This document shows positions 8,194 through 62,585 of a stretch of 64,000 bases of DNA, piece by piece. Position 1 is the stretch's first letter; every line of letters begins with the position of its first letter. Source of the DNA: Utricularia gibba (lineage: Eukaryota > Plantae > Magnoliophyta). The DNA lies in contig CM007989.1 in assembly GCA_002189035.1 (NCBI GenBank), forward strand, positions 6,138,001 to 6,202,000, given 5' to 3'. Made by a program: the position numbers and the translations under genes. A model generated the notes under the pieces. The model made no database searches. It was not told where the DNA came from and worked only from the letters and a program-made list of their open reading frames with translations.

Positions 8194-10670
8194 TGTTGCA
8201 TGTCGTTTCCTCAACAAATTTTAAATATTTGAAATGTAAAACACCAAATAGCGTAGTACGAGTATCGATCACAGGGAGTTGTTTTTCGTGAAAAGGGTTT
8301 CATAAAAAACTTCTACAAAATGTCACGGTTTTGTAAAAGGGGGTTTGTGGAATGCAGAAATAAAAGTTACAACCTAAGTAATGTGCCTTGACTACGGGAC
8401 ATAGTTCCTGGGAATAAGATTTCATCTCCTTATTTTATCCGTTCTTGCCTCAGTTTTCACTGATTTCTTCCGAATAGCTGATTATAGGAGCAAGGAATAA
8501 CCTACTCTCCCTTACACTCTGATTGACAAGGAGGCACGGGAATAGCCTCATGTGATTCCCCTTGGACGATTAGGAAGACAAGAGGATTGCCTTCGATTGC
8601 CTTCAAAACCGAATTGCGCGCATGTGCCTAGCTGTTGCCAATGGCCAGTGGCAGGTCCGAGGTCACAACTTTTCCACTGTCGCGGTACCTGGGCCACAAA
8701 CAATCCACTACTTCCCTCGAACCAGCAGGGTTGGAGTTGGTGCTCTTCACCTTGATCTTCACCAAAATCCGCGAGGAGTGGCCTGCTACTCATTGACCTT
8801 GACTAAGAGTCGTTACAGAAAGACTGCAACAAAGCGCATGGAAGTATGCAGAATCCGAATTGAATTCAGCGAAGAACCAAGTGTATTGCTCAGGACTTGG
8901 AAGGAAACTTCATCTACTTTCCAGAAACTAAAGTTTTTTAGCCACAAAGGGCCATGGAAACAGAAACGAAAAGGAAGCGAAGTGTTCTGATGGTAATTCT
9001 GCAAGTGCACAGAAACCATCGAAGTAATAAAATAAGATCATATCTACAGGGAATTGTTTTTGGAATATTCTTTTCAAACAAAGATTCAAAAAGACCGAAA
9101 ACAAGAGAAATATTTGGTTTTGAAGAGAATAAGAAAAGTGGCTTTGGATCTAAGATCTACCTTACTTGAAACTCGCCCTTGTGTGTGTGCAAACCTTGAG
9201 AGCTGACATGCTTGCGCAAGCTTTGGGGTTGTTATGCTAAAATAGTGCTATTCAGTGACCGTTATAGCACCGTCCCTTGTTTTGTGGGATTATGGAATCA
9301 ACCACGCCACCAGAGCCACTTCACCTCTTGTGATTACCCATGTTTTCCCCACACTCAAATCTAACCCCTACACTTCACACCTCGCAGACAGATTAAACAG
9401 AATGTGCCTTACCAACGATGTCCGATTGAGCCCTTCTCCTTAGTTGCTTGAGGCCAACCTTTGATTCTCCCACACTCCCTTAGGGCTATATGGTACTAAA
9501 GATCACGTTGGTAAAGAAAACGTTGCAAAAAACAGAATCAGACCTCAAATTAAATGCTGAAAAACATGGTAAGACAGTCACACGCGCAGAACTTGCGCAA
9601 GCAAGGCTTCACAGCAGATCCTCAGCTGCAAGCGCTTACACGTGCATGCTTGACTCTAAACAACAAAAGTTGATGAAAAACGAAATGAAAGGAATCTAAA
9701 ACATGCTAGATTCGACTCTAAACCCTACATTGACACTCTGGTCGTCCACCCTTGACTTCCCTAGGTCTTCGCGTTTGGATCTTTATATAATGGTGGGGAT
9801 TTGTCGGGTTTTCTTGATGGGCTCGCATCAAATCTTCTATCCGAATCTTTGAAGATTTGATACAAATCTTCTAGGATGAGATCCAATTTCTCCAAGATAA
9901 GATGCGAATCTTATCTTATCCGAGAATCTTTGATCGAGTCTTCATCCGGATAGACCAAATCTTAGCCTCCATCAAAGTAGCTCGAAAATCCTCCAAATTA
10001 TTCCAAATTATCCTGAAAAATCATAAAACACACTTTTCCTCCAAAAAGATCAAAGTGGTATGAAAGATATAAAATTCTTCTAGAAACATAAGGAAAGTGG
10101 GATAAAAGAATGTAAAACTCATCTAAGTGAGTCTCAAAAAGCACAAATATAAGTGATACAAAATCACGTATAATGTTCTTCCTCCTTGAGAGGACGAAGA
10201 ACTTAAAAGTTCTAAGTACAAGAGAAATTGTTCAAAAGTTTGAAACTAAGTGCTCCAAGTGGCATTTATATCACTCCTCCACGTGCATTAACTCTTTTGG
10301 GTCCCCTTCTCATCATTCCTTCTGTCTTGCGTGCGCCAGTGGATTTCCTTTGCATGCAAGTTAGCGCCCAATCAATGCTGCAAACTCTAACATGCCGTAA
10401 GTCAGGGGCCTTGACTAGTGTCAGTCCTCCGCCCACAATTGTTCCAAATCACGTACAAGGCACGAAAAGTCAGACTCTGACCACTTGCAATACTCCTGTA
10501 ACACTCCATGACAATCTCCTGCCATGTCTTGGTTAATGTGTGAGAAAAAAGACATAAAATATATACAAAATTGGAAAATATGAATTTTCTAATAAAAATC
10601 AAATACTTAATAATAGGACTCCTAAATACATAATAATACCTAAATAATTACTAGAAAATGACACTTAACA
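8194..10670 (-). mobile_element. Solo LTR, family C (2477 bp), inserted in the RNase H of element A
   Basis: Termini TGTTAAGTGTCATTTTC...GAAACGACATGCAACA; perfect 5-bp TSD TACAT (8189-8193 / 10671-10675); excision restores EINDVSRRENLVADHL. Confidence 0.92.
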
Positions 10671-12539
10671 TACATCGTTGATCTCAACGTCAAATTCTTG
10701 AACTAGAAGTACCTATTTAATAAGTCTTGGTTTGGAGTTCTTCTTCTCCATTAAGTGCTTTACCGCTGAATGGTTCATGTTGACCACCACTTTGCTACCT
10801 AAAAGATAAGAACGAAATTTTTCCAAGGAAAAAATAACAGCTAAAAATTTCGTTTCAATGATGGTGTAATTTTTATGGGCCTCGCCTAAGAAATAATAGA
10901 GTTCTTTCCTTCAATTTTTGTCATAAAACTACTCTCATAGCATGGTTAATAGCATCACACATGATCTCAAAATCATACCTCAAAAGTATGAGAAATAATA
11001 TGGAGCTTCCCTTCAAAGAATTAAAATCATGTTTACATGAATTATCAAAATTAAAAGCAACATCATTATTCAACAACCTACTAAGATGCAAAACAATTTT
11101 GGAAAAATTCTTAATGAACTTCCTATAAAAACCAACATGTCAAAGAAATGATCTAATACCTTTCACATCAATAGGATAATTAAGTTCAGAACATAATCTC
11201 GATTTTCACCTTATCTACTTCAATTCCCTTTTTAGAAATCACATGCCCTAAAATAATTACATGACCTATCATAAAATGGCATTTTTTCAAAATTTAAAAC
11301 CAAATTCTTTTCCATAGATTTCTTTAAAACCTTATCCAAATTATCTAAGCATGACTCAAACTTTTCTCCATACACCGTAAATTATCCATAAATTGGAGAA
11401 AATACTAGTAATGCATCTCTGAAATGTGGTTGAAGCATTCCACAATCTGAAAGACATCCTCCCATAAACACAAGTTTCTAAAGTAGGAAACTGACTATAT
11501 CCAAAATAGCCATAAAAAAAACAATAAAATGATATTCCTACCAATTTCTCCAACATCTTGTGAATAAAAGACAAAGGATAATGGTAATTCTTTGTCACTT
11601 TATTTATTTTTTGATAATCTATGCAAACGTGTCATCCATTTTGTATCCTTTTTGGCACAAGTTCGCCTCTCTCATTTTCCACCATGGTTATCCTAGTCTT
11701 CTTTGGAACAACGTGAATCATACCCACTCAATGTCTGTGATGGACTATAGGATTCATGTATCATGAATTTTATCAATTTTTTTTCTTACCACCTTCATCA
11801 TATTTGGGTCAAAGCGTCTTTGAGGTTGGTGAACTGGTTTTGCATGCATATGGATGAGCAAATCCCTTCAATGTCATCAAGCGTCCAACTTATTTCCTTC
11901 TTATTTCTGTTCAACACTTTAAGTAATCGTGACTCTTGGTCGGAGCGCAGACGAGTGGAAATGATAACAGGCTTCATGAACTCTACATCAAGAAAAACCA
12001 ATTCAGCTAACCCTTCTTCCCAGGTCTTGGTTTGCACCACATTCAATGGCTTAAATTTTTCCTCAGCTTTCAATTTTGCAAGTAGAGATTCTTCATGAGC
12101 CTCTTCCTTTTCTTGAATTTCTTTCTTCAAATGCTCCTCAATGTGTCCATCCTATTCACCGTACAAATGCTCTCAAAATCATTGGGATAATTCTTCACAT
12201 CCTTCCTATCAAATGTGATTTTATCTTCATCAAAAGAGAGCTCAATGACCCCTATATTCACATTAATGCTAGTATTGGAAGTACTCAAAATTGCCTTTCC
12301 AAGACAATGGTCGTGTCTTTTGATCCTTCAATGGGCATATTCACCACATAAAAATTAGTCGAGAACACCAAATGCTCAATTTTCACCAAAACATCCTCGA
12401 CCAATCCCTTGGGAGAAATCACTCTTCTATCCAATAGCTCAATTTACACTCCCAATGCTTGGAAGGGTCCTAACCTATGAGCCTCATAAATAGAATTCGA
12501 CATGATATTCATAGAAGCTCCAAATCTGCTATAGTTCTC

Positions 12540-13665: not shown

Positions 13666-15428
13666 ATCCATTATTTTTTAAGGAATAAAAAACGTAATTG
13701 AATCCTTGTCTTTTCGGGTAGTTTTTGTGTGAGAAGTGCATAGTAGCTTTCACTCAATTTCACCTTTCCCTTTTCTTTCAACTTGTGTTTGGACATACAT
13801 AACTATTTCAAATATTTGACACTCTTCGGTACCAAGTAAATGTACTACAATAGAGTTAATTTCAATTGAATATTTCCCATTGCTTTCCATATTTTCTCAA
13901 CTTTAGTCTTCTTGGAAAAGGAGGGTGGGTCACCTTCGGTATGATAGGTTCTGGAAGTACTTCAATTTCATCTTCATTCTGCACAACTTCATACTCCTTT
14001 CTTTCATTCTCCTTAGTTTCAGTTTGGACCAGTTCTCGTCAATGTTTTTCTATTCCATTCATAAGGGTCATGGCACTGACGTTCGGTCCTCTAGTGGCTT
14101 GGGTTGAGATGGTAAGCTTCCTTTATGTTTTAGTTCCCCAAGCTCTGTTGCCAACTAACTTACTTGAACCTCCAAATTCCGGATGGCTTGTTGATTTTTA
14201 ATTGATTGCACTATGAATGTCTTCAACGTTTCTTCCAAAGAATTTTTAGAATTCCCTCCAACATTGCCTTGATTTGGGGCTTGAAACTGCTGCTAGTTCT
14301 ATTGATTCTTTCTTCGAAATAGAGTTGTTGATATGATCTTTGCTCCTGAAAATTTTTCTGTCCCATGGTTGAGCTCTCCTCTTTGTAGGAATTTTCATTG
14401 TTGTTCCAACAAAAATTTGGATGATCCCTCCAACCTTGTTTCTATATATTTGAATATGGGTCGTATTTCTTCCTTTGTAAGGGCTCTAAATATCCCATAG
14501 ACTTCTAATGCTCTAAATCAAATAAATTTGGGCACTTATTTGCAACATACTCTGTTTTGTGATAGTTTCCACACAACATATTCTTAGCCTACAATAAGAA
14601 TAGCTCCTACATCATTTCTAAGATAGTAACAACATTTTTCGTGAGTTTAGCTTCTGAAACCCTGGGCTTGCTCTCAACTTCATACATTCTCTTATTTGAG
14701 GCCTACTTCCTAATAATATGTCTCGAATGCTCAGCCAATTCCTCAAGCAAGGAAAGAGCTTCGGTTGGTATCTTTTTCCTTCAAAATCCTCCTGCAGCTG
14801 AATCTACCATGGCCCTATTTGTGCATAATAATCCATGATAGAAATATTTGATTAAGGCATTGGCTTAGAAACCATGGTGCAGGCCTGAACCCAAAGGATA
14901 ATTAAATCTTTCCTAATATTCATGTAATGATTCACCACTCATTCGTTCAACATCACCTTCTTCATTCCAACCGAATTGGTTATGCTTCCAAGCCGCAGAG
15001 ACCTTAGAGATTGAACCATATTTTAGCTCCTTCTTCCAAAGTAAATTAGAAGGCTGTCAAACAATTTGAGTCCTCAGTCATTTTTGCTCCCTTGAATGAT
15101 GTACATATTGTTGTCACATTGCCAAGATGCTCATGGGGTTTTCTCCAATTCTCCCATAAATATTGATGATCATAGCTGGCTTGAGCTTGTTTGCTCCATC
15201 ATGTGAAAATCGGATGCATATACCCTTGTAAGTGTGATGAGCAGCATCTAATCTGTTCAAGATCTTCTGAGGTTCAGCCATTCTAAAATCAATGTTGGTC
15301 GCGGTTAAGTGCTACCTCAACTTACTCGCTTTCCTCACTTTCTTCTTGTTCTTGCTAATAGCTCTCTCGATTTCTAGACACAAAACAAGACTACTTGCAC
15401 CAGAAGAATGCAATTGTATCAACCAATT

Positions 15429-17258: not shown

Positions 17259-17900
17259 TCAATCAAAATTTGCCGATATATGCGTGACCAAATCATTTTT
17301 TAGCCGTCGGTGGATGCTGGTATCACGTGAATGCTCTATTCGACATAAATAACTTTGCATATTGATCCCAACATTTCTATAAACTTCTAGTGGTTCGACA
17401 ATCATAGTTCTTTCTTTTCCAGTAAATGTATTATCTCCAAGAATGATATGACTTTCATCTTCTACAATCATATTATGCAATATGATACATGCATACATAA
17501 TATTCACACTTCCAAGTATTTTAGGAAATCCCCTAGTCTTTCCTCAAACCAGCAAACACTCCAAGTCTTCTATTGTGGCTGATTGTAAATACTGTTCTAA
17601 AAAATGAGAGGGAATGGCAATAAAAAAATGACAAATACACTCTATGGATTTTGCCTTTCTAATTCAAATATATTCGTCAACACTATCAACACTAGAATCA
17701 TAAGCCATCAAACGCATAACAGCCATGCACTTTTGTAATAGGCTTAAGTTTAGACGACTTGTGCAATCATTTTGAATATATGCAAAATTTCAATCATTTT
17801 GAATCAGACCAATGGAACGGTGGCAAATCAAGCTGAGTCACAATTTTTTGCTGATCAAGTCCCAGATGGATATATGAATGCTGTTCGTGATGCAATTTGT
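17259..17900 (-). pseudogene. PIF/Harbinger DDE transposase remnant with internal deletion
   Basis: LSLLQKCMAVMRLMAY..SVDSVDEY...RGFPKILGS fused directly to IMYACIILHNMIVEDE...IHRRLKNDLVTHI; several stops. Confidence 0.8.
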
Positions 17901-22573: not shown

Positions 22574-25405
22574 TTGTTAATGCATTTACGTTCCCTTTCA
22601 AATCCACTTGAACCCCTTGATTTGGAGATCGAGAGGACCGAAAAATTACTGAAAAAGAAGCACAAACAAAGTCAGCAAGAGGCTAAGTTGAGAGCCGAAG
22701 AGATTGCTGAAAACCCATCAAATAACCAACAGCTTGTGAATATTTTGGAGAAGACTATTGGAGAGTATGAGTCACCAGATCATACATACCGAGGGCACTG
22801 CATTACCTTTCCTACAGCAGCAATTAATTTGGAGTTGAGGCCAGGAACCCTTGCTATGTTTCCTAAGTATTATGGGAACAAGAATAAGGATCCTCATATG
22901 CATATTGAAGATTGTATTGCTGTTGGAACTGTGCTGCGACCCAAGGACGTGACTGAGGATGATTTACTACTTAGAGTCTTCCAATTTACTCTTAAAGGAC
23001 ATGCCAAGACTTGGTTCAACACACTTGAACCTGGAAGTATTAGAAGTTGGATGGAAATGAAGAAAGCATTTTTAAATCAGTTTTTTCCTACCTCTAGAGC
23101 AGACGAAATTCGAAGAAAAATTGAAAATATTTTTCAGGATTATAATGAGTCTCTACATGAGTATTGGGACAGGTTCACAACTCTCCTTTCGAGCTGCCCA
23201 CATCATGGATTTGATAAATTAAAACAAGTGAAATGTTTTTTGAAGGGTTTGGCTACTGCTCAAAGAGATAAGTTGGATTCTGTTGCACATGGTAATATGA
23301 GAACTCTTACCCCATCTGAAGGCTGGGAGAAAATTAAAGAAATGATTGGTCATTCCAGGCATTCTCAGTTTCGATCTCGAGCCCAACAACAAGTGAATGA
23401 AATGGGAATTCTAAGAGAAGATGAAGCAGCAAGGCAGGACAAGGATATTGTTGAATTGAAGGATATGGTAAAAGGATTATTTCTTGTTCATGCCAAATCC
23501 ATGCCTTGTGAAGTTTGTGGTATTTTGGGGCATACTCCTGACCATTGCTCCATGAAAGGAAATCTGGAAGAACCACTTTCAATGGGGTACATGAATAATA
23601 GAGCTGATTATTTCAAGCCCAAAAATGACCAACGATTTGAGCCTATGAGGAGTCATCCCAATTTCAGTTGGAGAAGCACCAATGTTGAAAATCCACAACA
23701 TCTGGGATTCACTCAACCGTAGCAGCAACCAGCTCCACCAATTTCGTTTCAGCAAGGGAATAGGCATCAAAGTAGGCCTTATCAACCCCCACATCAGAGA
23801 GTTGACCAGCCAAGCACTTCAGGTTTTAAACCACCTCCTCCAACTGAAGAAATGATGAAGATGATGCTGGAAAACATGGCCAGACGCGATGCTGAACAAG
23901 CAAAAAGGGATGCTGAATCTGAGAAGATGATGAAGAGTCTTGAGAGACAAATTGGCCAACTTGCTATAGAGCTCGCTGAACTGAAAGGAAATTCAGGGAA
24001 ATTACTATCTCAGCCCAATGCTAATCCGAAGGCCAACATTTCTACTATAGAACTTCGTGGGGGAAAGCAGCTCCCTGGCCGGAAAGCCCCTACAAGCCAC
24101 AGCAAAGCAGCAGAAGGGATTCAAATTAATTCTGAAGATAAGGTGCAGCATGAAAAGGCAGCAAGGGAACTTGTTGTTGAGATCAAGAAGACGCCTCCTT
24201 TTCATGGAAGATTGCAAGCTCGAGCAAGGCAAGAAGAAAAGGACTCTATCATTTCAGCCTTGGACTCTGCAATGATCACCATGAAGGCTGTAGATTATTT
24301 AAAGCAAGTGCCGAAAGGGATGAAAGTATTGAAGGACTTGTGTAGTTCGAAGAGGAAAAGCAAGGATGAGGACGTGATCAAAGTCAATGCTCAAGTCTCC
24401 GCATACCTGACCCAACCGATGCCAGAAAAATGTTCAGACCCTGGAACATTTTTTGTTCCTATCCAGGTAGGAACTAAATTCATCAGTAGGGCAATGGCAG
24501 ATCAAGGCGCTTCAATCAACATGATGCCTTATGAAGTTTATTTGGCACTGGATTTGGAACCCCTCAGGCCAACCAACTTGAAATTACAACTTGCAACCAG
24601 ATCCATGGCCATTCCGGAGGGTATTGCTGAAGATGTTCTTGTTAGAGTTTCTAACACCTGTTATCCTTGCGATTTTGTTGTTGTTAAAATGCCTCCATCT
24701 AGGGTGAATGATAATACTTTAATTCTAGGACGCCCTTTCTTAGCTACTGCAAATGCTCAAATTGATTGTAGGAAAGGAGCCATTACTATTGGTTATGCTG
24801 ATGATATTTCTATCTTTAAGACCAATGAAACTGAAAAGTTCCCTGATGCTTTTGCACTTGTGACTGGAGTTGATGTCATTGATGAATTAGTAGAGGAAGT
24901 TTTTGATGAAGAGCAGCATGATATTCTTGAATTGTTTAGACAAGATGTTGAACTTGAAGAGGAGGAAGCTGAGCATGTAATTCTGGAATGTTTCATTGAA
25001 GATAAAGACTTGGTGAAGCTTGGAGAGGTGACTAGTGTTGCATCACTAGAATTGAAACCCTTGTCTTCACATCTCAAGTATGCATTTATTGGTGACAATT
25101 CAAAGCGAGTGATTATTAGTGCTGATCTTTCTTGTGAAGAAGAGATGAAGTTGATGGACGTTCTTAAGGCTAACAGCAAGGCTATTGGCTGGACGCTGGA
25201 TGATATAACTGGAATTAGCTCTTCTGTCACAATGCATAAGATTTATCTTGAAGACAGAACAAAACCAGTTAGATAACCTCAGAGAAGGCTTAATCCGACC
25301 CTCATGGAGGTTGTGAAGAAGGAAATCCAGAAGCTATTGAAAGCTGGAGTGATTTACTCGATTTCTGATAGTACGTGGGTAAGTCCTATCCACGTAGTCC
25401 CTAAA
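22574..25405 (+). pseudogene. gag-pol polyprotein of element B, two premature stops, 3' truncated
   Basis: PLDLEIERT start, retrotransposon gag domain, CX2CX4HX4C knuckle (CEVCGILGHTPDHC), protease DQGASIN, RT start PQRRLNP..EVVKKEI.KLL.AG; stops at 23720-23722 (TAG) and 25274-25276 (TAA) in the same frame, no frameshift. Confidence 0.92.
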
Positions 25406-27883: not shown

Positions 27884-28345
27884 ATTGAGCATTTCACCCA
27901 TGATATTGCACTGAGCCATTATACCCATGTTAATACAAGTCACATCATATACAAATGAATTGAGGATAGTATTTTTGAAAATTTCATTGGCTCTGCTATA
28001 TTACTTTTTGATGTTGTTGATCTTAATGGTACTAAATTGATTCTATTCTTACATTAATTATTAGTGGGACATCTTTTTTAAAAGTGGAAAATTTATTGAT
28101 GAGAGATTTTTAATAATTTAAATTGCAGTTTAAATTTAATCGAATATCTATTAAAAAACATGTTAGAATTATAATAAAATAATTCAAAAAAACAAAAGCA
28201 TGTCTTATCTCTATTTTTTTAATTCATAAAATACAAATTTGAGTTAATATGTGATGGATGACATGACATAAATGGGGTTGTTTAGAAATCTACCCATCAC
28301 TTACAAATCTACCCACTCTTTCTCCTCTCTCATTTCACTTCTAAT
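27884..28345 (+). repeat. Dispersed repeat (pairs with 3866-4400)
   Basis: Direct visual alignment, about 85% identical. Confidence 0.85.
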
Positions 28346-29881
28346 CTCTCATTTTATTTTCTCTTATATTTATCTCTGTCCATTTCATTTTCATATTTAT
28401 AAATTTTATTTATTTAATTAAAAATCATATTTATATTATAATATATACATTAGTTCACTTTATAAAATACCATCTTAAAATTTTTGATTAATTAATACCA
28501 TATTTCACTTTTTGTTTATAAAATACTGTTTTTAATTTAACAATATTTTTTAAAATATCTATATATACATGTACCATATAATATATAAAATATTTTATTT
28601 TAAATATCATTTCATCATATGTAAAATGGATATATTTTAATTTTATAATTAACCATTTATTTTTATCATTATATAATTAAAAATAATAATTGAAATATAA
28701 TTTCAAATATCGTTTATAACATTGATGGATAGTGCTAGTAATTTTAATTACTTTTTAAAAGCATTTATAAATTCAAGTCAGCTATTGTTTCTACTTCAAT
28801 TTTTAATAAAAAAAAAATTTATTTTTATATAAAAATAATTTTAAATTTTAAATAAATTATCATAATTAAAATAAAATGAATTCTGATATTACACATGTTT
28901 AAAAAATAAAATATGTATATCATCTAATACAAATATAAATATTCAAAAGTTTAGAATTGATAAATTTGTCAAAAATAACATCAGATACATTTAATGATTA
29001 GGCTTTCAGATTTGCCAATGTGTAAATATATTTAGATAATTTTCTACATCATCCACATCGACAATGCCCCCAAAGGAACAAATGCAAAAAATTGTACGAA
29101 ACAAGAAAATTGTGTGTAATTTGAATGTAATTTTATGACATAGGAAAAATTGCATTCTTAACTTAAAAAAAATTCCATTAGATAAGTTTATTGCAAAAAC
29201 TTAAAAGAAAGAAAATAAATATATAATTCAAGTCATGAATTGGATTTAATATCAATTTATACAATCAATCATGCATTAGCAATGTGTTGGTAGAGTCATA
29301 TTTGATTTCAAATGCTTAATTATTCCAAATATATCATAAAGTATTTAAAAGCAAAATATGAATATTAAACACAACAAAATCTCTTTAAAAATTTAAAGAA
29401 TTGCAAAAAATACTGTTCTATTTATTTGTTGGTGTATTATCATTACCTGGATTCTAGGCACTACTTTATGTATAAAAAATGTCTGGATTCGAGACACTAA
29501 TTCGTGTTTAATTTTCGAATTTCATACGATTAATGTTATTTCAGACATTGTTAACACAAGAAATAGTTCCTAAAGTAGCATTTGTTTTCAGTTTGTTTAT
29601 GTGTTTAGTATTACTAATAACCTCTTATATGATATGATATGGTTTATACATATAAACCATGTGATATGATATCATATTGAATTATATACTTACATACTTA
29701 TATACTTAGAGAATGGGCCCACAACAGAAAGAGTTAAAACCCTTTAGAGAGAACAATAACAAAGTAGCTTTTTGCAACAATAAATAACTATTCCTCTATA
29801 TATAAACCATATGATATCATAAATATTTCAAATATACTGAATTATATATTTATATATTTATATATTTATATATATTTGATC

Positions 29882-29908
29882 TATATATATATATATATAT
29901 ATATATTA
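29882..29908. repeat. (AT)n microsatellite within a very AT-rich block
   Basis: tatatatatatatatatatatatata. Confidence 0.9.
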
Positions 29909-30489
29909 TATTTAATTAATATAATCTATTATCTTTAAAATTATTGAAGTATTTTTAAATATTGATATATCTATTTGATAACAATATATCATTGAAAGGC
30001 CTACTCATGTTATAAAAAATATTACAAACCGTATTAATTCCATCTATTTTCAACATCTCAAACCATACAACAAAGGTATCAAATAGAATAAATTATATTT
30101 TTAATGAATGCTACAAAATAAAAATGATCATATAATTTGACTTTCTAACCAGCAAGTTTAGTGGGAAACTTTGGGTATTCCCAAGGGTACTTCCACAAAA
30201 AGTTGGTCTATGAGTCATAATATCCATTTTGCAGGGGTGTTTTTGAAAATTAACCATTGTACATTTATCTCACACACTAAACAAAAAAAATATATATATA
30301 GAATGAGTAGATTTCTAACACAGTCAAAACACAGGGAGTATTTTTCAAAAAAACCCCATTTTGCGGATCTTTTACTAAGGTTATACTTTGTTTTTTTTTC
30401 AATAAGAAGTTATGGGTTTTTCAATTCTTCAAGCATATATCAATTGTAAAAAAATTGGAAAGGCAGGTACAATATGTTATGGATTTTAC

Positions 30490-31585: not shown

Positions 31586-34572
31586 ATGATTCTTCGTTAC
31601 CATGTCGCCGTTACCTTCGCCGTTATCCTCGCACTCGCTGGCGCCGCGACACCGCCCTTCTCCTGCGGCCCAGGCACACCCTCGTTTCCATTCTGCAACA
31701 CCTCACTCCCTCTCCCGCAACGAGCGGCGGATCTGGTGTCACGATTAACTCTAGAAGAGAAGATTTCGCAGCTCGTGAGCTCCGCTTCCGCGATCCCCCG
31801 CCTCGGGGTCCCGGCGTACGAGTGGTGGTCGGAGGCCTTGCACGGCGTCTCCGGGTACGGCCGCGGAGTGTCCTTCGCCGGCGGGGTCCCCGCCGCCACC
31901 AGTTTCCCCCAAGTCATCGTCTCCGCGGCTACATTCGACTCCCATCTCTGGTACCGCATCGGTCAGGTACTATAACTACACTACCAGTTCATTCCTTCGA
32001 TTTATTTTAATTGAGTTGGGAAAATTGTAACCCATTCATTGCAGGCTGTGGGGGTAGAAGCGCGGGCAATGTACAACGAAGGGCAGACGAAGGGTTTGAC
32101 CTTCTGGGCGCCGAACATAAACATTTACAGGGACCCGAGGTGGGGGAGAGGTCAGGAAACACCTGGCGAGGACCCGTTGGTCGTGGCCAAGTACGCCGCC
32201 GCTTTTGTGAGGGGCTTCCAGGGAGAGCAATCCCCGGACCCGCAGCGGCCGGATCCCAGACGCGGCCGCCTCCTGGCCTCCGCTTGCTGTAAGCACTTCA
32301 CCGCCTACGATCTCGACCACTGGAATGGCGTCAACCGTTTCGGCTTCGACGCCAAGGTCATCGTCAATTCGTCATGCCTCTTTTTAATACTCTACTTAAT
32401 TCGTCTTACCCATCCAAATCATGCTATAATGAAATAAAATATTGCCTTTTTTAAAATATCGGTGGAAAAGGTGCATCATTAAATTACATGGGGCCCACAT
32501 ATTACCGACATTAATTACATGGTATCTGGTTATTTTAACAATTTTTAATATGAGTTGTTGCAGGTGAGCCCGCAAGACATGGCGGACACGTATCAGCCTC
32601 CTTTCAGGAGCTGCGTGGTGGAGGGGGAGCGAGTGGCATCATGTGCGCTTACAATCGCGTGAATGGAGTCCCCAACTGCGCCGACTACGACCTCTTGACC
32701 CGCACCGCCCGCGGCCAGTGGGGCTTCCACGGGTAACTACTAACTACTGCTCCCACTCGCATTACATCACTCACTGCACCGGCCGCCGCCCCACCTTCTT
32801 CAATGCGGGCCATTTAGGATAATGCCACTGTAGTTGTCCTCTTTTGAGAGAGAGGACTATTTTAGTAGGTGGAGGAAACCACCCTGAAAGTGAAATCATG
32901 TGAATTTGGCATACCCCAATCGAGTAATCCATTGCTTGTTGGGTAGGTACATAACCTCAGACTGTGGTGCCGTTTCAATAATACATGATGTCCATAAGTA
33001 CGCCAATTCACCTGAGGATGCGGTTGCGGATGTGCTCAACGCGGGTATCTCTTCTTTGCTTCTGATTTGTGAAGTTTTTCACCATGCCTTCGTGTAGGAA
33101 CTGCCATGCTTTCAGTGTCTGATGGTAGCCTGGTGTAGGGATGGACGTGGACTGTGGCTCCTACATGAAAGCATACACCAAGTCAGCTGTTGATCGGAAT
33201 AAGTTGCTAGAATCGCAGATTGACAGGGCTCTTCGCAACCTCTTTGAAGTCAGAATGAGATTAGGCCTTTTCGATGGCGATCCAAGAGTGCAACCATATG
33301 GTAAACTCAGAGCACAACATGTTTGCACCGCAGATCATCAGCTTCTAGCATTGGAGGCTGCGAGGAACGGCATTGTTCTGTTGAAGAACGAGCGTAAATT
33401 GCTTCCGCTCTCCAAGTCCAGAGCCTCCTCTATTGCTGTGATCGGCCCTAATGGTGACTCTGCTTATGTCCTCCTTGGAGACTATGAAGGCCCTCCTTGC
33501 AAATCCGTGGAGATTTTCAAAGCTCTCAAGGGGTATGTCACCAATACATGGTTCCACAAGGGGTGCAACTTTGTCAACTGTACTGCAGCCACTGTAGACG
33601 ATGCAGTTGCCTCTGCGAAGCAGGCAGAGTATGTGGTTCTGGTAATGGGGTTGGATCAGACACAAGAGACAGAGGATCATGATCGTGTGGATTTGAGGCT
33701 TCCCGGTCTGCAGGAGACTCTGATCAAGGCCGTGGCTTCAGCTTCGAAGAACCCTGTTGTGCTTGTGCTAGTCTGTGGAGGTCCAGTGGATGTTTCATTT
33801 GCAAAAGACGACAACAGAATCGGGAGCATCTTGTGGGCTGGTTATCCTGGAGAAGCTGGAGGCATTGCTCTTGCTGAGATCATATTTGGTGATCACAATC
33901 CAGGTCATTATCCTTGTATTACAAAGCTTCTTTGATCCTACTCGGCTGCTGATGCAACCTGCAATTTGTGTGTTTGCAGGTGGGAAGTTGCCTGTGACTT
34001 GGTACCCAAATGGCTTCACCCAAATCCCAATGACGGATATGCGGATGCGCCCCGATCCTTCATCAGGATATCCAGGGCGAAGCTATCGCTTCTACACCGG
34101 ACTGAAAGTTTTCGAGTTCGGCCATGGTCTAAGCTACACAACCTACTCCTATGAATTCGCCTCAGCAACACCAAACGTCATCAACCTGAGCCAATTCGCA
34201 ACACAAAGGAGTTACACGGAAGCCTCACAGTCCTGGAACTACCTCTCGGTCACAGAGATCGGAAAAGATAGCTGTGAGATGCTGAAGTTCTCATGCCATG
34301 TTGGTGTTGAAAACGCAGGCGAAATGGCAGGGAGGCACCCGGTTTTGCTGTTTCTGAGAAGTGAAAGAAGCGGCAGTGGGCAACCTGTGAAGCAGTTGGT
34401 GGGATTTCAGAGCGTTGGTCTGTATCCAAGAGAAAGGGCTGAAGTTGAATTCGTTGTGAGCCCATGCGAGCATCTTGCAACAGCTAATGAAGATGGTGTT
34501 ATGGTGATTGAAGAAGGATACAGCTTCTTGATGGTTGGGGACAGAGAGTACCCCATCAGCATTCACCTTTAG
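31586..34572 (+). CDS. BXL7: GH3 beta-D-xylosidase (BXL7-like), 6 exons; apparent 1-nt deletion in exon 3
   Basis: Exons 31586-31966, 32045-32356, 32564-32732, 32947-33044, 33139-33903, 33980-34572, all GT-AG. Signal peptide; motifs [45 protein letters not shown] (nucleophile Asp), GLDQTQETE. Exon sum 2318 nt, one short of a multiple of 3. Confidence 0.93.
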
Positions 34573-60617: not shown

Positions 60618-60625
60618 CGACGTCA
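60618..60625 (-). promoter_or_regulatory. TGACGTCG (TGA-type bZIP motif)
   Basis: CGACGTCA on plus, 200 bp upstream of the PROPEP-like ATG. Confidence 0.4.
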
Positions 60626-60821
60626 GTTTTCCCACGTTGTCAAGTAAACTGGACTTACCATGTTTACCCTTGAGGATTAGAATTGTTACCCAACTCCCCA
60701 CTTTTTACTGCGCTATAATAACACTGTGAAAAGAGGAACGGTGGTGAGGTTCCAGGCAATTTAATCCCCTGCCACCCCCCAGCATTCAATTTCTCCACCA
60801 ACCGACACCAGAGCACGGCAA

Positions 60822-61100
60822 ATGGAATATGCAACTCCGGTGCAAGGCGCCGCGGCGGAGGCGGAGGCGGCAACAAACCCTCAACTCTTCATCTCTTCCT
60901 GCAGCCCATGCTGTAAATTCATCCGAGCAGTCCTCAAATGCCTCGGCTTCGACTCCGAACGGCACCCTGATTCTCCTCCGGAGATTATCTGTCAGCAGCC
61001 GGAGGATCCACCGACGGCAACTCTGGCGCGCCGGAGGCCCCCACGTCCGCCGATACAAAGTGGGGGCGGACCCCAGACGAACGCCAACCCCGCTGCCTGA
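60822..61100 (+). CDS. PROPEP: PROPEP-like plant elicitor peptide (Pep) precursor, 92 aa, intronless
   Basis: No signal peptide; PCCKFIRAVLKCLG block typical of PROPEP N-terminal regions; acidic/Pro linker; C-terminal ATLARRRPPRPPIQSGGGPQTN aligns with tomato Pep ATDRRGRPPSRPKVGSGPPPQNN. Confidence 0.8.
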   Translation: MEYATPVQGAAAEAEAATNPQLFISSCSPCCKFIRAVLKCLGFDSERHPDSPPEIICQQPEDPPTATLARRRPPRPPIQSGGGPQTNANPAA

Positions 61101-62585
61101 ACTTGGAATATTATGTAACCTAAATCTCTCCGTTGTCTTTCAAAATCTGCGATGTTAGGTTTTTGAACTACACCAGCTTATGTTGAACAAAGGAGCCGCT
61201 GTTGTTCTTTTCTACTAGGGATTCATACAAATTCCTGAGATAAAATCAACAATACAATACAAATGCGCATAATATTTAAAAATATTGGAATTTTTTATTC
61301 TGAGAAAATAGAAAAGAAAATACGACGTTTGATATTATAATTGTAAAAGACGCTCAGGTAGGGCCTGACTACTACGAATTGTTCTTTTAAAATATTTATG
61401 GTTAATAAATTAAGAATGCTATTATTCCATCGATTTTGGGACTGGTCTGGTCTGTATGAGATGCCGTGTCAATCTCATTCTTCTCGTTTTTTTTTTTCCT
61501 TTTATTTTTTGAAAAAAAAATATTCAGCGTACGTTGACCAATGGGTTTCTCACTTTCACGAGATATTGTGAATCACATGTCACTCAAATCAGGGAGCCAA
61601 TGTTTGTTCTTGTTCAATAAGGCAAGCCAAATAAAAGGATCTATACCAAACCCTTCAATTTTTTTTTCCATAATCCAAATTATCCCATACTTTAAACATT
61701 CTTAATTATAACTTCCATCACATCATGAAAAAGCATAAGATCTTTAGAAAATCTAAAGACATGTGTTTGATAGTTGAATATGCTGCAAATAACCACGGGC
61801 GGAATGTAGTGGGGGCGGGGGGGAAATTAACACGAACAAGGCTAATAGTAATACACACTATTAAAATTAAAAGAATATGGCAGAATGAGAAATTAAAATT
61901 ATAATTAATCAAAATTACACTAGAATGCAAGAAAATGAAATATTTTTTTATTTTGATTTTTCATTCTTTCCTAATAAGATTATTTTCAATAATATCCCTT
62001 TTTTATTTTGCATTTCAATTCCTTTTTTTTCAAAAAATTTTTCTCATTTTTCTCTTCGAGGGTAATCAACATTTTTATAAAAAAAAATACTCTGGAACAA
62101 GATTTGGAAATTATTCATTATTGGAAACCATTTCTTTTAAACAGGTCAAAACCAAGGTTAATTTTAGTATGGTTGGAAAGTCTCGGACTCAACATGTTAG
62201 GAACACAAGGAACACGACAAAAAGACAAAGCAGCCAAATAGTTGCATGTTTTTTCTATGTTTGACTGGTACTTACAAAATACTGCTCAGTTTTATATATA
62301 CTTTTCTAAAACTCCAAATTTAATGACACATGATCATTTTTTAATTCGCTTTTGTTCTCACGGGTCAAACATTGTGGATTTAGCACCATATTTTTTAAGA
62401 AAACCTTAATTATGATTTTTTTTTCCGGAGGGGTGGCGTCGTGGGGTGGACTAGTCGCCAACGTCACGTAAAGGACTAGAAAAACCAAAATCTGACAATC
62501 AAGAAGGAAGAATTGTCTGAGCTCCTTCCGTTCCCACTTTTTTCAAGTCCTCGTTCTCATTTCATACCTCCCTTGAAAGTTGAAT

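Follow-up and report, generated by a model that had tools for sequence, protein, structure and literature searches.

A probable intronless PROPEP6-type gene of Utricularia gibba with an old, constrained tail behind the predicted Pep asparagine

Peps and their PEPR receptors form a central damage-signalling module of flowering plants, and peptides of the REF1 type are now in use for better regeneration and transformation. The described precursors that are closest to the locus analysed here are AtPROPEP6 (with AtPep6), Citrus PROPEP5 and the Solanaceae PROPEP6 proteins (SlPep/REF1 type), all of them small, signal-peptide-free precursors that share an N-terminal ...CxKF(V/I)xA(V/I)LKCLG block and a basic, Pro-rich core of the form RRRP(R)PP...SG..(P/G)Q.N, and that end exactly at the Asn of this core. 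The ...A(V/I)LKCLG block is also present in AtPROPEP1, AtPROPEP2 and AtPROPEP6 (Lori et al., 2015). PROPEPs are reported to be largely unstructured, and AtPROPEP1 and AtPROPEP6 are located on the tonoplast. For AtPep1 the last 15 residues, AtPep1(9-23), have an activity comparable to that of the full-length peptide, deletion of Asn23 leaves the peptide nearly inactive, and Ser15 is critical, whereas functional Solanaceae Peps have Gly at that position instead.

The end of the frame differs between known precursors. AtPROPEP1, 3, 6, 7, and 8 and those of Solanaceae, Citrus and others carry no tail behind the Asn, whereas post-Asn tails are given in Table S2 of the same survey for AtPROPEP2 (SVPNAAIQVYKED, 13 aa), AtPROPEP4 (KKPF), AtPROPEP5 (DYDM), A. 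lyrata PROPEP7 (KAPS), Eutrema PROPEP3 (QASY), Aquilegia (GNSV), MtPROPEP2 (ISSS), and GmPROPEP3 (a long tail) (Lori et al., 2015). A further parallel is found in the CLE and IDA precursors, the ligands of the same LRR receptor kinase subfamily (XI). Their mature ligands end in Asn or His with the carboxylate clamped by receptor Arg residues, and many of the precursors carry, like a tailed PROPEP, residues after the final Asn that need to be removed, for which trimming by carboxypeptidases has been proposed. CLE and IDA precursors have no sequence homology with PROPEPs, and they are secreted with a signal peptide, with subtilases as their processing enzymes in the secretory pathway or in the apoplast, unlike PROPEPs, which are cytosolic or tonoplast-associated and released upon damage. 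Structural work on the sister receptor PXY and its ligand TDIF showed that binding drops strongly once a single residue is added at the C-terminus; the pattern around the final residue has been called "highly conserved" with AtPep1-PEPR1, and the carboxylate clamp sterically bars extra residues. A PEPR exists in Lamiales, as Erythranthe PEPR1 (EgPEPR1) was included by Lori et al. (2015), which holds this receptor and no Lamiales precursor. Searches of the PROPEP literature with Lamiales names returned nothing relevant, and Lamiales PROPEPs therefore appear to be undescribed in the literature searched.

The window, i.e., the whole stretch of 64,000 nucleotides that was analysed, contains an ORF that starts with ATG (context caaATGG), is preceded by a first upstream in-frame stop at 60762, and ends with TGA at 61098-61100 (Table 1). 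A sequence-only reading of the window had described a 92-aa intronless ORF encoding a PROPEP-type precursor, and its account of the ORF was confirmed: the ATG-to-TGA product is exactly the one described, its residues 66-87 read ATLARRRPPRPPIQSGGGPQTN and are followed by ANPAA and the stop, and the N-terminal block PCCKFIRAVLKCLG is also found in it. A single ORF contains both conserved blocks, in agreement with an intronless gene, and the PROPEP genes of Striga, Erythranthe, Handroanthus, Paulownia, and Salvia (the five genes of Lamiales for which the DNA was inspected) are likewise single-exon, with a gene span that equals the CDS length exactly. With 92 aa the product falls within the size range of small precursors (about 75-155 aa), and an N-terminal signal peptide is absent as judged solely by hydropathy (maximum 9-residue Kyte-Doolittle mean of 1.34 within the first 30 residues).

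The ORF is situated in an island of 62% GC with flanks of 30-33% GC, and this island also holds a 109-codon ORF (frame +2) and a 90-codon ORF (minus strand) that both overlap the PROPEP ORF. Since 24 ATG-initiated ORFs of at least 92 codons are present in the window, length proves nothing and the PROPEP case rests on homology. By exact-product look-up neither a transcript nor a public contig of the 92-aa product was found, and the products of both overlapping ORFs (109 aa and 90 aa) had no public record.

A palindromic GACGTC core is present at 60620-60626, approximately 200 nt 5' of the PROPEP ATG; read on the minus strand it yields a TGACG-type (as-1/bZIP-like) element, which appears as CGTCA on the plus strand, at the level of consensus only. 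An ACGT core (consensus-level) follows the palindrome at 60634. PROPEP promoters are stress-responsive.

Table 1. Features of the predicted PROPEP6-type gene and its flanks (positions in the window).
Feature	Position	Strand	Basis
Single-exon CDS, 92-aa PROPEP6-type precursor	60822..61100	+	ORF, PF17232 match, homologues, single-exon relatives
Conserved N-terminal PROPEP block, residues 25-43 (SSCSPCCKFIRAVLKCLGF)	60894..60950	+	Alignments
Variable acidic, Pro-rich linker, residues 44-69	60951..61028	+	Gapped, poorly conserved columns
Arg cluster R70-R72, candidate N-terminal processing site	61029..61037	+	R71 conservation; cleavage predicted by homology
Pep core P73-N87 (PPRPPIQSGGGPQTN), predicted receptor-binding part	61038..61082	+	Alignment, Pep comparison
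Post-Asn tail A88-A92 (ANPAA), predicted C-terminal pro-segment	61083..61097	+	Tail in 18 of 23 Lamiales-type rows
TATA-like element TATAATAA, putative core promoter	60714..60721	+	About 108 nt 5' of ATG; weak, consensus-level
AATAAA, possible polyadenylation signal	61404..61409	+	About 305 nt past stop; weak, consensus-level

The Pfam model PF17232 (Pep1_7, "Elicitor peptide 1-7") matched residues 24-81 of the product, where the local alignment ends, with an E-value of 3.8e-05 and 24.5 bits, just below the gathering score of 26.2 bits. No relatives were found when the protein alone was used in a word-indexed search. Using phmmer against 1.84 billion proteins, ten matches with an E-value of 1e-3 or lower were obtained, nine of which were proteins of 74-115 aa that aligned over both ends of the query (E-values 1.5e-09 to 1.4e-04). 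These relatives came from Handroanthus, Striga, Erythranthe, Salvia (annotated as "elicitor peptide 6"), Paulownia, Euphorbia, Alnus, and assemblies of public reads. Searching with a profile of these relatives brought up 37 proteins, of which the majority had a precomputed PF17232 domain and several were called "elicitor peptide 6"; it added Buddleja, Sesamum, Phlomoides, and Forsythia among the Lamiales and Fagales, Ilex, Actinidia, Nepenthes, and Rhododendron outside of them. The relatives named to species are mainly Lamiales. When scanned singly, 30 of the 31 aligned family members hit PF17232 (best E-value 3.5e-18), and all six invariant alignment columns (C40, G42, P73, P76, G81, and N87) are kept in the window protein. 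Homologues were found solely for the PROPEP frame and for neither of the overlapping ORFs. The assignment to the PROPEPs in the sequence-only reading is thus borne out by the Pfam match, the nine homologues, and the behavior of the family in single scans: the window gene is an ordinary PROPEP family member, and from its sequence 60822..61100 is very probably a genuine PROPEP gene. A sequence search of the PDB returned a chance match alone, to a copper ATPase (E-value 0.43).

Several of the database models in the family (among P0036-P0039 and P0022) appear to be mis-predicted. The Fagales-like models run from ...HAERETKAT into VNLSLSLSL..., which resembles intron read-through, and the Buddleja entry ends in ...GGRGEEDEAR, which is not a Pep C-terminus.

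Within the N-terminal block, little or no variation is seen at C27, L38, C40, L41, and G42 in both alignments (A1 and A2); in A2, C40 and G42 do not vary at all, and L38 and L41 reach a conservation of at least 90%. Residues 36-43 read AVLKCLGF and thereby match ...A(V/I)LKCLG(F/L). The block of the window protein differs from the Lamiales consensus at four positions and resembles SPCSVCNKFVQAILKCLGL of AtPROPEP6. Published Pep sequences for the comparison of the 23-mer T65-N87 were taken from the table of Lori et al. (2015), and identities were 13/23 with Citrus Pep5, 11/23 with Nicotiana Pep6, 10/23 with AtPep6, and 4/23 with AtPep1. Because of these identities and the AtPROPEP6-like N-terminal block the protein is, on sequence grounds, assigned to the PROPEP6-type lineage, which is broadly also the type of tomato SlPep/REF1, with PROPEP6 as the closest Arabidopsis type. 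It shares the signal-peptide-free architecture, the N-terminal block, and the basic, Pro-rich core with the known members of this type and differs from them in four respects: it continues with ANPAA where they end at Asn, it has Gln at position 15 of the Pep where they have Ser (Gly in Solanaceae), its linker is much shorter and without an EKE-like motif, and it has no Arg 24 residues before the Asn. The linker is also shorter than in most of the relatives.

The core itself aligns with the known Peps, as had been claimed, and identities over its 15 residues were 11/15 with Citrus Pep5 and 7/15 with AtPep6. Alignment A2 shows no variation at P73, P76, G81, and N87 of the core, and a conservation of 90% or more at I78, G83, and Q85. 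With respect to the motif S15-x-G17-x5-N23, the residues G17 (G81), Q21 (Q85), and N23 (N87) are present, and position 15 is Gln with a Ser at 16. The register of the Asn is conserved in the family. From the locus and its relatives a Lamiales Pep motif R-x-P-P-R-P-P-I-S-G-G-x-G-P-Q-T-N was derived, which could be synthesised and tested.

The Arg and Lys residues of the protein are, in full, K32, R35, K39, R47, R70-72, and R75. No Arg is consequently found directly before T65, as the sequence-only reading had pointed out for the -24 position, and its arithmetic for cleavage at R70-R72, namely a 20- to 22-mer ending in ...QTNANPAA, is correct. Counted to N87, cutting at R70-R72 would leave a 15- to 17-mer; by analogy with the active AtPep1(9-23), 15-17 residues would be enough. 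R71 is kept in 86% of the Lamiales-type rows. Upon cell damage the precursor would accordingly be cut at or near this conserved Arg to yield a peptide some 15-17 residues long. The default candidate for this step would be a type-II metacaspase, the enzyme class that releases the Pep of AtPROPEP1 by a cut after R69. AtMC4 reportedly shows no appreciable cleavage of AtPROPEP6, whether in vitro or in protoplasts (Hander, 2019; Shen, 2019), and release by metacaspase 4 is for this reason not secure for a type-6 precursor and less secure than the sequence-only reading had it.

A tail of the form [A/T/S]-N-P-x was found in 18 of the 23 Lamiales-type rows, many of which are assemblies of public reads whose taxonomy could not be checked. 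Among the 18 tailed rows the third tail residue is Pro in 100% and the second is Asn in 83%, and conservation of the tail equals that of the Pep core and is far above that of the linker. The Pro is retained in at least five named families (Orobanchaceae, Phrymaceae, Paulowniaceae, Lamiaceae, and Pedaliaceae), and the tail of Striga has the same length of five residues, the same Pro-Ala-Ala ending, and the same TGA stop as that of the window gene. Across the six tailed loci with DNA, the Pro codon varies between CCC, CCT, and CCA, and the sequence past the stop (3' UTR) cannot be aligned between relatives; the constraint on the tail therefore acts on the amino acid. The tail is, by these alignments, an ancestral character of the Lamiales clade under constraint at the amino-acid level. 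Fagales have the tails QSSS, KSSS, and KASS, and other tails of 3-5 residues are present in Ilex, Nepenthes, and Euphorbia.

The tail-less relatives (both Handroanthus copies, Forsythia, Phlomoides b, P0010, Actinidia, and Rhododendron) all stop exactly at the aligned Asn. In both of the Handroanthus tandem copies a 4-nt insertion right after the Asn codon creates a TAA, and the old tail codons together with the old TAA stop still align downstream of the new stop. As read from this relic, the tail-less state of Handroanthus is derived and represents a natural truncation at the Asn. The longer copy, P0020, keeps the conserved Arg and the Pep core.

The two Handroanthus genes are 1.1 kb apart (10001-10225 and 11347-11646 of locus L006). 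The shorter copy, P0001, is without the linker and without any Arg upstream of the core, and is possibly decaying. In Phlomoides, too, two PROPEP copies lie side by side.

The extension of five residues behind N87 had been described as non-canonical in the sequence-only reading. The tail is real but neither private nor unprecedented, given the homologous tails of the relatives and those in Lori et al. (2015). In AtPROPEP2, 4, and 5, the Aquilegia PROPEP, MtPROPEP2, and GmPROPEP3 the frame extends from 4 to at least 13 residues past the Asn, as it does in the window protein, although these tails show no sequence relationship with the Lamiales [A/T/S]-N-P-x, and the Pep cores belong to the Lys-rich Brassicaceae type or to other types specific to a family. 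The accompanying statement that the Asn normally ends the protein is correct for AtPROPEP1, 3, 6, 7, and 8 and does not apply to AtPROPEP2, 4, and 5, Aquilegia, Medicago, and soybean, so that an Asn as the last residue is not truly defining for the family. To the question whether ANPAA is conserved, which had been raised together with the prospect of relatives that end at N87, the answer is that most relatives carry a homologous tail.

We consider it moderately probable that the locus is an intact intronless PROPEP6-type gene whose tail serves as a C-terminal pro-segment and is cut off precisely behind N87, so that the Asn is exposed for a PEPR. The freed carboxylate of this Asn would fit the pocket lined by Arg residues in an LRR receptor kinase of the PEPR type; the kinase would then recruit a SERK/BAK1 co-receptor and trigger defence or wound signalling; both cleavages, the receptor, and expression of the gene are proposed here by homology. 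Removal between N87 and A88 is favored by the tail-less relatives that end at the Asn, by the clamp seen in PXY, and by the effect of the Asn23 deletion in AtPep1. The tail could be removed by an endopeptidase with Asn specificity (such as a vacuolar processing enzyme), by a different endopeptidase, or through trimming by exopeptidases. Of these, the vacuolar processing enzyme (legumain) family is an attractive candidate: its members have P1-Asn specificity and accept Pro at P1' poorly, so that such an enzyme would cut between N87 and A88 and spare N89-P90. In the literature searched no protease that removes the post-Asn tail from any PROPEP was found, which is a weak negative as unrelated "propeptide" papers dominated the results. 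The second C-terminal trimming step that the sequence-only reading had called for is reasonable in itself, but it applies to many PROPEPs and not specially to the window gene. The old, constrained tail sharpens the largely ignored question of how tailed PROPEPs, AtPROPEP2, 4, and 5 included, gain a free C-terminal Asn, and the Lamiales tail together with the Handroanthus truncation makes C-terminal Pep maturation concretely testable.

As a tentative and rather doubtful extension of the pro-segment reading, the Lamiales tail may act as a safety catch that blocks the carboxylate pocket until an Asn-specific protease cuts the N87-A88 bond. The protease would be, e.g., a vacuolar processing enzyme that is freed when the vacuole ruptures, and the Asn-Pro bond that follows would resist it. 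If true, activation of the Pep would require a pair of independent proteases, both damage-dependent, and such a two-key logic has not been described for Peps.

Two other explanations for the tail have to be weighed, both of which we regard as improbable. The tail may stay on the mature ligand, with Lamiales PEPRs that have co-evolved to accept or need ...QTN-x-N-P-x and that perhaps read the second Asn. The conservation of the tail at the level of the Pep core, with synonymous variation at the Pro, is in line with this proposal, as is the co-evolution of Peps and PEPRs family by family (Lori et al., 2015). Strong conservation of the tail may speak just as well for its retention in the active ligand as for a pro-segment. 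It is opposed by the repeated origin of tail-less precursors within Lamiales (Handroanthus, Forsythia, Phlomoides b, and P0010), all with the same Asn end, and by the high conservation of a carboxylate clamp between PXY-TDIF and AtPep1-PEPR1 that sterically excludes extra residues. Tailed and tail-less PROPEPs moreover occur side by side in Arabidopsis, where they share the receptors PEPR1 and PEPR2.

Alternatively, the gene may be a silent or decaying copy, or its tail may be neutral and tolerated since an unspecific protease trims it, which we likewise hold to be improbable. The outcome of the transcript look-up, the PF17232 score under the gathering cut-off, the replacement of Ser15 by Gln, the four positions at which the N-terminal block differs from the consensus, and the unusually short linker would all suit a silent copy, and the short and variable tails elsewhere (QSSS, KKPF, DYDM) would suit a neutral one. 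Against this, the ORF is intact with all invariant family columns kept, and the Pro has been preserved in at least five families with synonymous changes at the six DNA loci, next to a 3' UTR that cannot be aligned.

A private stop-loss or a sequencing error is very unlikely as the source of the tail: it is conceivable solely because the closest single match, Handroanthus P0001, ends at the Asn, a state that is derived in that genus, and it is contradicted by the 18 of 23 rows with homologous tails and by the identical ending and TGA of Striga. A chance ORF in a GC-rich patch, or a real gene in an overlapping frame, has a negligible probability despite the three long overlapping ORFs in the island and the 24 ORFs of this size in the window, as homologues exist for the PROPEP frame only, tblastx with the Striga locus matches the two conserved blocks of this frame, and the overlapping products are nowhere on record.

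With tblastn and a motif scan no PROPEP paralogue was found elsewhere in the window; tandem PROPEP pairs occur in Handroanthus and Phlomoides. Synteny with the Striga, Erythranthe, and Handroanthus loci was not detectable. When the Striga locus was compared with the window by tblastx, the two had in common the two conserved blocks of the PROPEP ORF and one unrelated element. This element (window 17493-17768, minus strand, versus 14277-14552 of Striga locus L004; 92 codons, 41% identity, E-value 7e-16) has no relation to the PROPEP and probably represents either a transposon common to both loci or a piece of a gene that has been conserved. In Striga and Erythranthe an LRR receptor kinase of approximately 625-631 aa lies about 6-7 kb upstream of the PROPEP on the opposite strand (Striga locus L004 1-3867, minus; Erythranthe locus L005 1-2595, minus), a neighbourhood that is not common to the window.

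Elsewhere in the window, a 382-aa ORF with a retrotransposon gag domain (E-value 3.7e-25) is followed by a 474-aa ORF without a Pfam match (22574-25276, plus strand); the pair probably belongs to a degraded or unusual LTR retroelement. The lowest GC content of the window, 20%, was found in the 2-kb stretch at 28001-30000. Two long overlapping ORFs of 47-50% GC at 33141-34572 (plus strand) match Glyco_hydro_3_C (E-value 2e-42) and an Fn3-like domain (E-value 4.8e-12), and look like exons of a family-3 glycosyl hydrolase gene of the beta-xylosidase or beta-glucosidase type.
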